A stretch of DNA of 50,476 nt from Amoeboaphelidium protococcarum X5 (taxonomy: Eukaryota > Fungi > Aphelidiomycota), in NCBI GenBank assembly GCA_023515725.1, contig JALDTO010000017.1:1-50476 (forward strand), read 5' to 3'. Position numbers and translations under genes: made by a program. Every line of letters starts with the position of its first letter. Positions within the stretch are counted from its first letter, which is position 1. Shown piece by piece: positions 15,171 through 50,370 of this stretch. The notes under the pieces are model-generated. The model was given only the letters and a program-made list of their open reading frames with translations, had not been told where the DNA came from and ran no database searches.

Positions 15171-17153
15171 ATGATGATCAATCAATTAGTGATAATATTA
15201 ATGGCCAATTTGTGTCTTCTAGTTACAGCGCCATTTCCTGTTAGCACTGGCGGTAGCAACTCTTTATTAGTATCTGATGAAAGAGGTACTTTATATAGTG
15301 TCGTTATTACATCTAGTTAGCTATTAATTGGGTCAATTAATGCATAAACTGGATCATCCTAAATTATGCTGACATATGATATTGGAAGTGCAAGCAATGT
15401 TGTAATTCCCAATATCGCACTAAATAAGAATGGTACCAAAATATACGTGTTTGGCCACACTGTCAACAAGGTTAATTCATTGTGTCCTTCACCATCATCG
15501 TGTAACAAGAACATTGTATTTATGATAATCGTAGATATTGCGACGTCTACGGGGACTTTTGCATATGGGCCCTCGAGCGGTGGGTCAACATACACGACAT
15601 ATGGCGGTGCAGTCAACTCCGTTAATGATAACGCGTATCTACTCTATGGCTCATAATAGTTCACCTTAGGCTGCTCTTTTGATTCGGGAATTGTGGTTTA
15701 TAATGCAATTTCCAATGCGTATTTTGATGTTGCTGGAATTTCCATTACATGCGGTATTGATAGATAAGCTCTAATTAGTTAAACGTCGTCTAATTAGATG
15801 GTGTATTTCTTATCCGCGTCCGGTAATTAATTCAACTATGCTTTTATCTCATCTACTGGTACTCAACTTTCCACTGCTCAGGTGTCATCCACTCTCTTTA
15901 CATCATATGGATACTCGAAGTATTTTAATCAGTCAATTGGATTAATCGGTACTACTGGTGCTAATAAGCTGCAATACTATGCTCCAAATCAGTTTACTTA
16001 ATAGTCTACTGTAAATCTGCCTAGCTATTTAACTGCTGCTGTAGGATCATCATTGTCTTTTAGTGAAAAATATGTCATACTTGCCACCAGTACCGAGTAA
16101 CTAGTTTTGGTAAATTAACAAGGCGCTATTGCGTACAATGTATCGACTGGCGCTTCCAGTATTGTGTCGACTGCGTATGATCCTTCTACAGGATTTCTGT
16201 ACTACTCCACTGGTACACAGATCGTTTAGCTGGCACTGCCTGCATCGCTAAAAGTGACGAGCACGACTAGCACTACTACGATAACTACAACCACGACTAC
16301 CACGACGACGACAACTACAACCACAACGACGACTACTACTACTACTACTACCAGTACTACTACTACTACCACGACTACTAGCACCAGCACCACGACGACT
16401 AGTACCACCGCCAGTACTGCATCATCGTCCACTGTGCGCCCAACTTCTACTGCTGGTCCGACTGCCACTGCTCTATCGACTTCAAGTAAAGTATCAACAT
16501 CTATGACAGTCTTGGCCTCTGTTCTACCATCCTCGTCTACTGTAGTCACCATTTCTACTACGTCAATAACCACGGTTCCTGTGTAAACGAGTACCACGCT
16601 TCAAGGAGTAGTTAGTTACAATTCGTAAGTAAGCTCTTCGTAAGGCTAGTCATCTCAAGTAGTATTGTCCACAGTTTCTACTACTCCGGGCGCTGTAGAT
16701 CCTGTGTCGTCTACTGTCACAAATGTGATTTAGACTACCAGTACGTCTTTGATTTTGGATAAAAGCAGTACTAGTTCAGAGTCTACATCTGATATGACTC
16801 TGTCTGCTACGAATACCGTCGCAAAGTCCTCAGTATCCGCGCAGTAAGTATCGCTGATTGTGCACAGTTCGTCATCGTCTAAGTTTGTTTCCACCTAGTC
16901 ATCAACGCTCTAGTTTACCTTTGTTCAAGATCAACATAGCAGTTCAACTTAGCATCAATCTTCAACAGTTGCGGTTACTACCTCTTCATAGGAAGATAAT
17001 AATAATGGAACCTTTGATAGTCAATTCGTGTATGGTCCAATCACGCCAGGATCGTTTTTGGCCATTGCAGTGTGTGGAATTTTGGTTCTGTCCGTTTCAG
17101 CTGGTGCTAGTGCTTACTTTTGGCGCGTAAGAAGGTATAATAAGAATTTGTGA
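15171..17153 (+). CDS. Type I membrane mucin-like surface protein (beta-rich ectodomain, poly-Thr/Ser stalk, C-terminal TM), ~660 aa
   Basis: Signal peptide MMINQLVIILMANLCLLVTA. ORFs 15366 and 16254 share the frame. TM FLAIAVCGILVLSVSAGASAYFW followed by RVRRYNKNL*. Confidence 0.82.
16254..16410 (+). repeat. Coding (ACN)n poly-threonine tract
   Basis: Runs of ACT/ACC/ACG/ACA codons encoding TTTTT... in the mucin stalk. The poly-Val ORF on the minus strand is its shadow. Confidence 0.9.
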
Positions 17154-17357: not shown

Positions 17358-18764
17358 ATGAGCACAATCTAGCTTATTTCTATAGCACTTAGTTGCTGGA
17401 TATTCTTGATATATGCTGGATTCCCGCTGTCTCTGTAGACTTCATCCTAATTGGTGTTGTTGAATGTTGATTCAGATGGCAATCTATATGCGGCCACAGT
17501 TAACGAGACTCATCTTTATTTGAATAAATACTCTGGCAGTGGAAATTTACAATACTCAAGTTCTCTTAATGTCAGTCAGACATCGATGCTTTCGTTGAAA
17601 AAATTGTCGCTATCTGAGGACACTGGTTCTGTTTATCTGGCTGGTACCACATATGCGAGTTTCGGTAACAATTCTATCATTGGGGTAAGTAATATGTTCC
17701 TTAATCAGTACAATATTTCATCTGGGCAATTAATCAATTGTTCATTCTATGGAAGAGATAATACTATCTGGTCTAATTCGTACGTTGGGGCAAATGGAAC
17801 TTATTATTTCATGTACAATGTTAATATGGGCCCAAATTTTGAATAGACCATGACTAGCTACGAAATTAATATTATGGCAGTAACGGCGAACAGTACTTTA
17901 ACATCTGTTTTGACTTATATACTATAAATTCCAACCAGTCTTTTTCTCGCATAGCCACTGCTGGGATACAGTAAACCGTAGGATAAGCTCAGTGTGATTT
18001 GGCCATTGTCCGGTGAGTAGAGTACTTCATAAGGCTCGTTGGCAACTTCATAAATATCATATCTGCAACTCTTGACTAATGGAACGATTGTGCGAGAGGG
18101 TACTGTGGGTTAACCATTACCTTATCCTATTTAATTAGTTAGCGGTCCTAATGGACACATGGTTTACCTAGCGGATAATTCTGGCGTGCTGATTGTAAAT
18201 GACAATTTGGGTCTAGTTTCGATTAAAAGTATACCACTGCTGGATTTTGCCTCCTCAAGTCTGATTTATTATTCTAACGATTATCCATTCATTTTTATAG
18301 TGGCCTAAAATGGACAATTTGCTGCAATTGATCAAAATGGACAGATATAATTTTACTTGAATCCCTTACTCAACCTGTCACCGGGGAGTGTGGCATACGA
18401 CAAAATCTCCAACAGACTGTTTGCCTCTTATAATGGAATAATATCATTTGCTAGTGTGAATGAAACAATTTCTCCTCAATCTATGGCATCAAGGAAGTCG
18501 TCAACGACTACAACGACCATGAGAGCCACAACTTCTGCACCCGCTCAAGAAACAATCCGTCCACCTCCACCGCCTGTCAGTAGAACATCCTCTAGAACGC
18601 TGAGTACATCGGTTCAGGGTACACTGACGAATCAAAATCGTCCTTCTGAGCGAGCAAATGCTAATGGTATATTTTATGGAGTGTGCGCTATAATTTTAGT
18701 CACTCCACTGATAGCTGGTCTCGCCTCCTATTTCGTTACAAGGCACCGCTTGAAGTACAGTTGA
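17358..18764 (+). CDS. Tandem paralog of the preceding surface protein (signal peptide, beta-propeller-like repeats, shorter S/T/P stalk, TM), ~468 aa
   Basis: Signal MSTIQLISIALSCWIFLIYA, then GFPLS...VDSDGNLY (cf. PFPVS...SDERGTLY in the neighbour) and GSVYLAGTT. TM IFYGVCAIILVTPLIAGLASYFV followed by TRHRLKYS*. Confidence 0.8.
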
Positions 18765-40649: not shown

Positions 40650-41046
40650 ATTATGAAGAAGAAAGAGTTGCCGAGACAGCAAAGTGCCGATTCGTTTTAG
40701 TTTTGAAAGATTTTCATTCGCGTTTCGGTTGGCACAAAAGCACACATGGTCCGACTGATTTTTAAATTCTACGGTATTGGCGTTCACTAAAGTCAGTAGA
40801 AAGTGTTTACTCTTTCAAAGAAATAAATATCCCTTGTCAATATTTTATGATCTCATTCCTAAATTTTCATAAATGAAACGCAGTTCATGTTTAAAAATTT
40901 TACGCGTTCAGGTTCCATCAAAGAAGCGTGTGTAACCAGCTGAACATTTGCTCCGTGAAACGACCTCCTGATCATCCTGGTGCTCATCTCTTTATTTATT
41001 TTCCGACGCGTCGTATTAGAAGAATTTATCATTTTATAAAATAAAA

Positions 41047-42024
41047 ATGCAATTTATAATGCTGAAATTCGAGTTGCTGATGGTGTTGGTAGTCATTCTT
41101 AATCGCGTATGCTGCTCACCGTCACTTTCCCGATATATGAGCGTTCTTTTAGATAGCGAAAGAGAATTACCTCTGGTCAAGATCAAACATGCTGCTGACA
41201 CCTTCATTTTAGACGAAGATTTTGCTCAGGATCCTTGTTTAAAATGGCCTGTTGGTGAGAGATTGAAATTCGATTTTGTATTGCGTCTATATCTGTTGGG
41301 TAATGTGGATCCTTCTCTGATTTTGGATGAGGTGGTCCTCATAGATTAACATGATTTCAACTTTATGAAGGCCAAGGAAATGTATTTATAATGGTCGAAC
41401 AAAGGAATGACTGAGAGTAAAGTAATTGAGCGACTTCCTTAATTTCAAGAATTGGTCAAAAAGGTTAATTTATTACATTCTGAAGCTAATTACATTGAAA
41501 ACAGGCTCGAGATTTAGTTCACCTCAAGTTTATAACTCCCCCCGGACACTAACAAACAAACATCGTATCACTTGGTATTATTCTTTAAACCCGCTTCAAC
41601 TGGCTCCAGTGAGACGTAGACTCAGTCCAATGATGACCTGACTGGGAGCGACGCGCGATTATCTGTGCTTGTTGGAGATCCTGGATTTGCCGTGTGTCCT
41701 TGTGGCTAATGGGCGCGCAGATTATCACACCATTCCAAGTTTAAACATTATCGCTCAAAACAGGAGAACGTTGCAAGACAGTAGAAAATAGATTCTCAGC
41801 CGTATCATGTCAGACACGATGATATTATGAATCTTCCCAGCGGTATCGATCCTGATTAGGACTGTATAATCTGTCATGATGCTCTATTAAATGGCAAAGG
41901 CGTTATGATACCGCGATGTCACAACCGTCACGCCACTCACCCCGAGTGCCTGAAATAATGGTACACGATCGAGTAGAAGTGCCCCACCTGTCGAAGCTCA
42001 ATTTGGATTAAAGAAAATGAATGA
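41047..42024 (+). CDS. Signal peptide + C-terminal RING-H2 protein (copy 1), 325 aa
   Basis: Signal MQFIMLKFELLMVLVVILNRVCC and C-terminal CIICHDALLNGKGVMIPRCHNRHATHPECLKQWYTIEQKCPTCRSSIWIKENE*. No internal TM seen. Confidence 0.83.
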
Positions 42025-42234
42025 TTAGAATAAATTATTAATTTAATAGAGAGTTTTCCAAGTTTAATTTGGCTTTTATTTAAAGTCGTATACTTTTCTC
42101 CTGCTTCTGGCATTGGTCAACCTTGACACACTTTGCATTCATCGCAGGGGTATCATTGGGGTCGCTTTTGATTAAAATATTCTACCCGCGTATGATTTTT
42201 TCATCAAGAAAGCGGTAATCTTAATGCTGCCATT

Positions 42235-43191
42235 ATGGTTAGATAGTTCAAAATGTTGATGCTCATGTTTTTGGTGACCACCCTGAATGAGATAACTAAT
42301 GTCCATGCTGTCAATCCTTTGATGAAGTGCTTCGGAAAGTCTTAATGCGTTTAAAGTGTTCTGCCTGCTGTAGATGTGATTGCTGCAACTCGTGCCAAGA
42401 GTGTTACCTTATTTTATTTTGAAAAATGTATGCGCTGGCCTGTTGAGTAAGAAATAACATTTAATTTTGCATTGCGGCTCTATCAGCTGACTGTGTACAC
42501 TGAACGCGTATAACTTGATAACGTCATGGTTGCACCTCAAGTGGATATCGATACCTAGTACAGTGAAAGATAGTTGCAAGAATGGGCAGTAAGAGGATAC
42601 CCGGCAAATTAATTGGGTGACATGCAATAGACACCAGGTACAATAGACTATAGCCCGCTAGAGATTAAATCTGTATCGGCGAAATTAATTCAGTCAGAAC
42701 GTAAGATTGTCTTCAACACACGTTTGTCTATTAGCAAAGACATCAAAGCATTGGATCCTGAATATTTGGTATTGAATTTTAAAGTCTTTTATAAGGAGCA
42801 AGATGCCTACAAAGAGTCTATATTGTCGGTAATAGTGTTATCGAGCAAGTTTAGCGTGTGCATACCTGGTAAATGGAATACTTTAAGTAGTAAAGTGGTG
42901 TTCAATCCGAGCTCTTAAGAAATTAGAGATTAAGAACGTAGTTTGATTGAATATAAGGAGAGGATTGCTGTGGACATTGTACAGCATTGCCAGCTCGATT
43001 AAGAAACGCTTTAAGCTTTCTAGGACTCCAAGTGTGTTATATGTTAAGAGGCTATGCTTGATGGGAGTGATTTAGCTATACCGAAGTGTGGCATTGTACA
43101 CTCCGCTCATGCCTCTTGCATACGAGAATGGTGTTTTGTTAAAAGCATATGCCCATATTGTAAAAAGACAATGTGGTACAAGGAGACGTGA
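42235..43191 (+). CDS. Signal peptide + C-terminal RING-H2 protein (copy 2), 318 aa
   Basis: Signal-like MVRQFKMLMLMFLVTTLNEITNVHA and C-terminal CVICQEAMLDGSDLAIPKCGIVHSAHASCIREWCFVKSICPYCKKTMWYKET*. Confidence 0.8.
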
Positions 43192-43275: not shown

Positions 43276-44316
43276 TCATAATTTTGTAAGGATTATAATT
43301 ACTGCAGCCACTATAACGGCTATTCCACCCAACGCGACCAATGAAATTACTTTGTAAGAACCCCTCCGGCTCCTTTGTAGTATTGCGGTTGTTGTTCGAA
43401 TCTTGTTAGACTGCGAATGATTTACTGTAGGTGGCTTTTCAGGAAGAGCATCAAACTTCATCTAAGATTTATCTCCGAGAGCTGCATGCGATTTGATATG
43501 CATGTTACTGCTCTCAGCCGATCCTATTAACGTAGGAGGTTTCACACTCTAATCTTGATCCGGATCACTTTCCTGTTCATTCACCTCCGCCACAGAAGAG
43601 TCAATAATCGATTTCATGTTTCCATGGTGGAAGTGGTATGGCTCATATTCTTGCGCATAAATCTCATCACAGGATGTATTGAACATTGATGTTAAGGCGG
43701 ACGCATTCACAGAAGCGCTAGTGTTGTTTGACCTGTCTCCCGGAACTTTGAGTTGATGCGATCTTAACTGATTACCGCCAGAGACCTTTTCAAATGCAGG
43801 CATTGAAACTCCACCTTTCAGCATATGACTCTGCTATATATTCGCTCGCTGCTCTTACGGAGTTAAACTGACAACCGGTCTGTTTTGGTCATCAACTTTA
43901 GCCATTAACTTTGCCGGAGTTGTCTTGGATTCGATCTGTTCATCATCCAAAGGCTAAATTCTAGGCTTTTGGCGCACAGTTACTTCTTCCAGGAAAGAGT
44001 TTGAATTCTCATCTTGTTCCGGCAGAGTCTAGCTGTCTTTATGATACAGAGTAATAGAGATCGAAGGTGCCGGCTGTCTAGACAAGGTGGCTTTAGAATC
44101 AACCTCGGTGATTTTAGTCAGATCAGCCTATGAAACATCTGGATCAATCTCCCCACGGATGACACTACAAGGACTGCTATGCTCACTCTCAACATCAATC
44201 TCATCATGCATCTCCAATCTAACTGGCGGCGGACATACAAAGTGTGACTTTTGCTCTTCCTCTTCAGCAACATCAGATTCTCCAGAGCTCACCTCCAGGT
44301 TTTTACTGCTTTCCAT
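43276..44316 (-). CDS. Uncharacterised, largely disordered tail-anchored membrane protein, ~346 aa
   Basis: ORFs 44128-44316, 43549-43824 and 43276-43461 join in one frame with TAR=Gln. Single C-terminal TM VISLVALGGIAVIVAAVIIIL followed by TKL*. Confidence 0.75.
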
Positions 44317-48319: not shown

Positions 48320-48979
48320 TCACCAATCTTACTGCCCACCTACTTCATAGTACTCAGCGCCATACTGCTGACCATCGGTCATGCTTTACTCATTTTGCTG
48401 TGTACGTTCTCTGCCATCAGCATCGTTAACGAAACCAGAGGAGATCGGTCTACCATTGAGCGGACCAATATTCATTCTGGACACAGCAGCATTACCGCGT
48501 TGTGAGCCTAACATGGTGAAAGCGGGCTGCGTCGGAGTAACGCGCCCACCTCTGCCGATAGGTGGTGCATCATCAGGCGTATAATCAGAAGGCAAATTCA
48601 AACCAGTAGGAATAACGCTACGATGATTAGAGCCAACGACACGGTTCAATCTGCTCTTACCATGGCCAAGTTCTGGAATTAGACGACGTCTGCGAGAAGT
48701 GTGGATTTTACGATCAGGATTCATTTAATAAGGATTCTCCATCGGATCATACTCAGGTGCTTGATCTCCGCGTTAGGTGGTGCCCATATTATTAAGACGG
48801 AGTATAGCGGCCGCAGCATTGTGTCTGTTGCGCAGTTAGTGAGGGCCGCTATTACGGCGAGTGGCTCTCCAATCATCGAAACCATCATTTGATTCCAGTT
48901 CAGAAGAAAGGTCCCCAAAATCCATAGGCATAGCACTTAGTGTAGCAGCCAGTAGCAGTATCAGCGCGAATTTGGTCAT
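48320..48979 (-). CDS. Secreted disordered R/P/G-rich protein of unknown function (copy 1), 219 aa
   Basis: Signal MTKFALILLLAATLSAMP. Contains ORF 48386-48724 in frame and is paralogous to 49594-50370. Confidence 0.78.
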
Positions 48980-49593: not shown

Positions 49594-50370
49594 TCAAGCA
49601 ATTACACCAGTTCCACCTTGAGGCGGATCGAAATCATAGTTACCTCCTTGATAGGGGGATCCATCATATCCATCAACTTGCCAGTCTTCGATATCTTCTT
49701 CTTCATCCTCATCCTCATTGTATTCCTGATCTTGTCTGAGATCATTTTCCTCGTCTTGCTACTATTAACGGCGTGCTCTACGATTAGCCTCAACAATTGA
49801 GACAGAAGGGATCTGTCTACCTGTGCGCGGGTAAGTAACCATTCTATACCCATTAGCATTAGCTTATTGTAAGTCAAACATAGTCAGAGCGGGCTAAACA
49901 GGGTGGATACGTGCTTAATTCTACGCCGAAATGCTGTTTCCTCGAGGAACAGGCGGCGCTTCATCGGGATAACGCTCAGTTGGTAACTCGAGGTGGAAGT
50001 TTGGTCTGCGTCCTGCAGAAGAACCGCGACTTAACGTGCTTTGACCTCTACCGCCTCTAACTGCATTTTGGAATGAACGTCTACTAGAAGTGCCAGTACT
50101 GGTACCGCGATCAGGATCCATATCACCTTCATTCTACATTGGATTGTAGTCAAGCGCATCAGCCACATCTTGATTAGCAGCTCTGTTACCCACGAGTCTT
50201 GCGGCAGCAGCAGCGTGCCTGGGCTATTAGTTAGTACCTCTGTTAGGAGGATTTGCTCTCCCCTCATCTTCATCTTGATTTCCTTGTTGATTTGGCGAAG
50301 GATCTTCAAAATTCTTGGGCATAGCATTTAGAGAAGCAGCAAGCAAAAGTATCAGCGCTAATTTGATCAT
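49594..50370 (-). CDS. Secreted disordered protein of unknown function (copy 2), 258 aa
   Basis: Signal MIKLALILLLAASLNAMP. Shared blocks with copy 1: YNPMQN/YDPMEN, MDPDR/MNPDR, LELPTERYPDEAPPVPRG/LNLPSDYTPDDAPPIGRG and QPALTM/QPAFTM. Acidic C-terminus. Confidence 0.78.

Follow-up and report, generated by a model that had tools for sequence, protein, structure and literature searches.

A tandem pair of RING-H2 proteins with signal-peptide-like N-termini in the aphelid Amoeboaphelidium protococcarum: candidate host-directed E3 ubiquitin ligases

Two adjacent genes of Amoeboaphelidium protococcarum, an aphelid that parasitizes green algae, encode proteins with a signal-peptide-like N-terminus, an orphan middle domain and a C-terminal RING-H2 finger. 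On balance, we favor the interpretation that these genes, A and B, are old paralogues, lying in tandem, of a secreted and lineage-specific E3 ubiquitin ligase of the RING-H2 type that has the algal host as its target. The combination of predicted export with a RING, together with the likeness to secreted E3 effectors of other parasites, makes "candidate host-directed E3 effector" the best reading of the pair. Aphelids are the phagotrophic sister group of fungi. The stretch of DNA analyzed, referred to as the window, comprises 50,476 nucleotides of contig JALDTO010000017.1.

Gene A (41047..42024, forward strand; deposited protein P0005) and gene B (42235..43191, forward strand; P0009) encode 325 and 318 amino acids in single exons, run from ATG to TGA and are spaced by 210 nt. 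The initial annotation had described two adjacent intronless genes here, and its coordinates and lengths proved exact. In a second assembly, the NCBI models of A and B (KAI3643536.1 and KAI3643537.1) are likewise single-exon, with an unchanged neighborhood, and no joint falls over A or B in the RNA-like contigs of the four runs considered below. The reading frames depend on the genetic code of the organism. Under the standard code the region yields a 100-aa frame only, and the frames of A and B are open only with TAA and TAG (TAR) as sense codons, of which A has 11 and B has 15, and TGA as the sole stop. When 16 neighboring genes were compared with their second copies, Gln stood opposite the TAR codon at 81 of the 127 informative homeolog positions. 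The deposited proteins correspond to the A and B frames at every non-TAR codon and have Q at all TAR codons; our in-house translations carry X at TAR, and full-length work was done from the deposited records. Because TAA and TAG are sense in A. protococcarum, A and B are intact, and the possibility that they are broken or frameshifted genes was ruled out, TAR being a sense codon genome-wide. Frame length is weak evidence in this code, as a shuffled window holds about three ATG-to-TGA frames of at least 318 codons; the case for the genes therefore rests on conservation, dN/dS and read coverage. The window is colinear over 45 kb (88%) with contig C192, on which both frames are open and the copy of gene A is KAI3635669.1. 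KAI3644653.1 is a further deposited protein of this set.

Contigs from four runs of one study were mostly restricted to gene bodies and differed about 100-fold in depth between neighbors, which is an RNA-like pattern. In three runs a single contig of about 910-950 nt extends over gene A (RNA-like contigs span 41037-41973), and gene B has one or a few contigs covering it. Because the four runs carry no record of their kind or of the stage sampled, we infer from the contig pattern that A and B are apparently transcribed. Upstream of gene A, the segment 40284-40649 is covered separately, by a short contig, in three of the four RNA-like runs, and it gave no match in Rfam at the gathering score. 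The convergent neighbor of B (43276-44316, reverse strand) encodes a protein of low complexity that ends in a hydrophobic tail; it has high contig depth and no recorded Pfam family.

The two proteins are colinear from end to end at 25% identity (full-length BLASTP E 5e-29). This kinship includes the middle regions, and the earlier description of these as having little mutual similarity was not borne out. With the RING removed, the A and B middles align with a score of 116 against 29 ± 4 for shuffles (maximum 66 in 2000), and either middle alone retrieves the other in the genome (E 1e-6 to 1e-7). The same three results rule out unrelated, variable middle modules. The orphan domain covers 41161..41715 in A (forward strand; about residues 39-223) and 42355..42876 in B (forward strand; about residues 41-214). 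Invariant in it are a pair of cysteines (Cys64 and Cys217 in A, Cys65 and Cys209 in B), the motifs C-x2-W-P, F-x-F-x-L-R-L-Y and L-V-L-x-F-K, and a second Cys-Trp motif. The domain matched no Pfam family, the PA domain included, and no relative beyond A. protococcarum was found among 1.8 billion representatives, 5.8 billion clusters and viral contigs. Among the matches listed, metagenome contigs gave a generic RING only and no relative of the middle domain. A weak Pfam score for RXLR (E 0.04-0.08), seen at residues 105-134 of A and absent in B, was below the cut-off and was rejected.

An AlphaFold2 model of B residues 38-220, built from six sequences, is a beta-sandwich with a helical insertion at low confidence (pLDDT 54, with strands at 60-75; pTM 0.60); a full-length model was poor (pLDDT 38). 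The top structural matches to the middle model are all Ig-like sandwiches, with Z no higher than 6.5 and within background. NPC2, of the ML (NPC2/MD-2 lipid-binding) type, ranked 36th; its Z of 5.2 is on a par with that of unrelated Ig-like folds, the model being weak, and the middle domain itself had no Pfam match. Since the matches lie within background and the model is of low confidence, they suggest an Ig-like beta-sandwich as the fold class and assign neither a family nor a function.

Comparison of the two genome copies places A and B among the more rapidly diverging genes of the window. Gene A is 79% identical to its homeolog on C192 (dN/dS 0.29) and gene B 78% identical to its own (dN/dS 0.27), against 91-100% homeolog identity for most neighbors and a dN/dS of 0.01-0.12 for housekeeping genes. 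A and B are under purifying selection (dN/dS about 0.28) and have diverged faster than their housekeeping neighbors, which are mostly 93-100% identical between copies. Elsewhere in the window, genes for secreted or surface products have values in a similar dN/dS range (0.17-0.38). With a dN/dS below 1 and like that of these genes, the rate marks A and B as secreted and not as effectors. The duplication that gave rise to A and B long predates the split of the genome copies, considering their 25% mutual identity against 78-79% between homeologs. Within gene B the RING is clearly more conserved than the middle (dN 0.047 and 0.124, respectively; dN/dS 0.06 for residues 267-318), and within gene A the middle does not clearly outpace the RING (dN 0.124 versus 0.100).

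The genome-wide search returned four loci only, corresponding to two paralogues in two genome copies, and the expansion of the family for which the initial annotation had allowed was not found. P0002 (E 6e-4) was ruled out as a family member, as it is a repetitive 909-aa protein whose match reflects periodicity. Atlas feature matches to A and B were under 0.9 and confined to the RING. A recent horizontal or viral origin was also rejected: viral contigs held no relative of the middle domain, the metagenome RING is generic, and GC, GC3 and TAR use are native. The proposal of a constant ligase joined to variable substrate-binding modules fails as well, since the middles are homologous, only two paralogues exist and the middle of A is not clearly faster than its RING. 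What stands of the earlier effector interpretation is the architecture of a signal-peptide-like N-terminus, a RING and no transmembrane segment (TM), which resembles that of secreted E3 effectors elsewhere. The lineage-restricted middle and the faster evolution relative to non-secreted genes, as seen in protein databases and homeologs, support the reading as E3 effectors.

Several other genes of related kind were observed in the genome. On C192, 451024-452061 (L050; second copy L047 on C292) and 446554-447339 (L051; second copy L043 on C76) encode proteins of 345 and 261 aa, each with a signal peptide, no TM, a low-complexity middle and a C-terminal RING-HC. They lie within 15 kb of the A and B copies, just past the end of the region syntenic with the window; their RINGs are 49% identical to one another and their kinship to A and B is through the RING only. 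Within the window, 48320-48979 and 49594-50370 (reverse strand) encode tandem signal-peptide, low-complexity proteins, of which the second and its other copy share 82% identity (dN/dS 0.38); together with the RING genes, this pair makes up a local cluster of secreted genes that evolve fast. The products of a further tandem pair, at 15171-17153 and 17358-18764 (forward strand), have signal peptides as well as hydrophobic segments at the C-terminus (dN/dS 0.30 and 0.17). On C158, 101167-102929 holds two RING matches on one strand, 1.6 kb apart, with no obvious second copy among the listed matches.

The RING-H2 finger lies at 41863..41991 in gene A (forward strand; C273-C315) and at 43033..43161 in gene B (forward strand; C267-C309). 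The matches to PF13639 scored 31.9 bits for A and 32.3 bits for B (cut-off 27.3; E about 1e-7), and the nearest solved RINGs are those of RNF165/ARK2C and HRD1 (E 1e-7 to 1e-8). All eight metal ligands, in C3H2C3 order, are invariant, and the spacing reported initially, C-x2-C-x14-C-x3-H-x2-H-x2-C-x3-W-x6-C-P-x-C, is exact in both proteins. Of the terminal W-x-KE reported with it, W-x-K (42004..42012 in A and 43174..43182 in B, both forward strand) is invariant in six sequences and the Glu is not. In canonical RINGs an Ile, a Trp and a Pro face the E2, and the residue that follows the last Cys, a basic one, joins the E2-binding surface. The E2-facing residues are invariant here (Ile269, Trp299 and Pro307 in B; the equivalent Ile, Trp305 and Pro313 in A), and the last Cys is directly followed by Arg316 in A and by Lys310 in B. 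The common RING-H2 form has an aromatic residue before the second His and a Cys3-His4 spacing different from three residues; A and B have a small residue at the former position and three residues in the latter interval. The RING is thus atypical relative to the common form, and ligase activity is not guaranteed.

That the E2-facing residues were kept in both paralogues despite 75% overall divergence, and that dN/dS is so low in the RING of B, speaks against A and B being secreted but not ligases at the place where they act, a reading that we consider rather unlikely. Under it, the proteins would reside at the host-parasite interface or the spore surface, the Ig-like domain would bind a ligand, and the RING would serve as a structural zinc finger, as a module for interactions or as a decoy for E2. 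The atypical RING spacing would be accommodated in this manner, as would the location of the interface, which is extracellular to the host (PMC3577820). An Ig-like fold is typical of binding proteins that act outside cells, and the invariant Cys pair of the middle domain could form a disulfide, both Cys being in low-confidence parts of the model.

The N-terminal segments bear on where the RING would act. The signal-peptide-like segment of A occupies 41047..41115 (forward strand; about residues 1-23, with the cleavage site placed by eye), and that of B occupies 42235..42309 (forward strand; residues 1-25). Both have a hydrophobic core of about 9-12 residues preceded by a basic residue, which fits the N-terminal signal claimed at the outset. 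In A, the short core follows Lys7, with a Kyte-Doolittle 9-residue mean of 3.8 at residue 10, and the segment is retained in the homeolog and in a second strain. In B, a basic n-region precedes the short core, and V-H-A at residues 23-25 comes before the likely cleavage site. The pattern of hydropathy and charge is signal-like in all six sequences (deposited alleles and paralogues). Beyond residue 30, the best 19-residue Kyte-Doolittle means of the six sequences are 1.0-1.46, and hydropathy thus indicates no TM segment, including none hidden before the RING, in agreement with the original observation. Of the 98 RING matches in the genome, the architecture was read for about a third, and among these were ordinary signal-TM-RING genes (L013, L025 and L029); such genes have a 19-residue mean of 2.9 before the RING. 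Endogenous ligases of the RNF13/RNF167/GRAIL type consist of a signal peptide, a luminal domain, a TM and a C-terminal RING-H2. Unlike these PA-TM-RING ligases, A and B have neither a match to the PA domain nor a TM ahead of the RING.

We regard it as unlikely that A and B are parasite-internal E3s, in which an uncleaved anchor, an organelle-targeting segment or a downstream Met start would leave the RING in the parasite cytosol. Signal cleavage is a prediction from hydropathy, yet the core of about 9-12 residues is short for a membrane span and the best N-terminal 19-residue mean of B is 1.3-1.6. The charges around the hydrophobic core of A are ambiguous; those of B, basic before the core and acidic after it, favor a C-terminus in the lumen. 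A Met at about residue 30 is shared by B and its homeolog, whereas the downstream Met of A is absent from its homeolog. Furthermore, endogenous E3s are nearly identical between the genome copies in the RING contexts seen, unlike A and B.

RING ligases require E1, E2, ubiquitin and ATP, and the secretory lumen is devoid of these. For a soluble, signal-bearing RING protein that has kept its E2 surface, the simplest account is therefore action in the cytosol of another cell. In the host-directed mechanism that we favor, a cleavable signal peptide would bring the protein, as a soluble one, to the host-parasite interface by way of the secretory pathway. The protein would then gain the host cytosol, putatively through the host plasma membrane by uptake, or after the membrane has broken up. 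There the orphan beta-sandwich would bind a host protein, as the architecture suggests, and the RING would engage host E2~ubiquitin by its conserved surface of Ile, Trp and Pro and by the basic residue that follows the last Cys, in keeping with established RING biochemistry, such that the target would be ubiquitinated. Delivery is the weak step of this mechanism. Electron microscopy places the parasite between the host wall and the host plasma membrane, which fragments late (PMC3577820); export into the host cell thus needs a translocation step, and no translocation motif was recognized in the A and B sequences. Delivery to the phagocytic food vacuole or the dying host protoplast, where captured host E1, E2, ubiquitin and ATP would serve to mark or neutralize engulfed host proteins, would dispense with membrane crossing and with such a motif and would suit the phagotrophic uptake of host cytoplasm and the later membrane fragmentation in A. 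protococcarum (PMC3577820), but it is improbable, as an acidifying proteolytic vacuole would presumably not long sustain a ubiquitin cascade.

Judged by their sequences, A and B are functionally like PbE3-2, RHA1B, the SPRINGs and NemLGF2, and are not homologous to them outside the RING. PbE3-2 and PbRING1 of Plasmodiophora brassicae, likewise an intracellular protist parasite of a photosynthetic host, combine a signal peptide with a C3H2C3 RING; both ligase activity and secretion were demonstrated for PbE3-2, and three of the five signal-bearing E3s of P. brassicae are without a TM (10.1101/2022.10.26.513834). In contrast, the aphelid lineage is unrelated, no search gave its middle domain a relative outside A. 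protococcarum, and its ligase activity is predicted. NemLGF2 of Nematocida displodere, a parasite living inside host cells and placed at the base of the fungal tree, is also lineage-specific and has a signal peptide or an N-terminal TM, with a C-terminal RING in about half of the members and a putative function; it comprises 235 members averaging 467 aa in a parasite of an animal host, as opposed to the two A and B paralogues of about 320 aa (PMC4928854). [quoted passage not shown] The secretory RING proteins of Daktulosphaira vitifoliae known as SPRINGs resemble A and B in their small size (median 252 aa), in being orphan and fast-evolving and in having arisen by duplication; they differ in being 138 genes of insect saliva with a median dN/dS of 0.57, compared with about 0.28 for the A and B pair (PMC6892190). 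The dN/dS difference of A and B from housekeeping genes has the same direction as that in the SPRINGs (median 0.57 versus 0.05; PMC6892190). Descent from NemLGF2 or the SPRINGs finds no footing, in that searches with the middle domain gave A. protococcarum proteins only and a large species-specific expansion is also absent.

The strategy of a secreted RING ligase is known in other parasites and is itself unlikely to surprise a specialist; what A and B add is an orphan domain and a new lineage. In the literature outside subscription journals, we found no description of aphelid effectors or of secreted ubiquitin ligases in this group. A broader proposition, which we put forward as a tentative one with the odds against it, is that aphelids evolved a toolkit of their own for host-directed ubiquitination and that one part of it is an undescribed ligase with an Ig-like domain and a RING, which crosses the algal plasma membrane or acts on engulfed cytoplasm with captured E1 and E2. 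In that case A and B would be the first aphelid effectors to which an enzyme activity can be assigned. Should they be active, A and B would mean that signal-peptide RING effectors arose independently once more near the fungal base, beside the microsporidian NemLGF2, and would contribute a new substrate-binding domain. They would also provide a testable way into the question of how an algal parasitoid overcomes its host, a question relevant to the protection of algal ponds.
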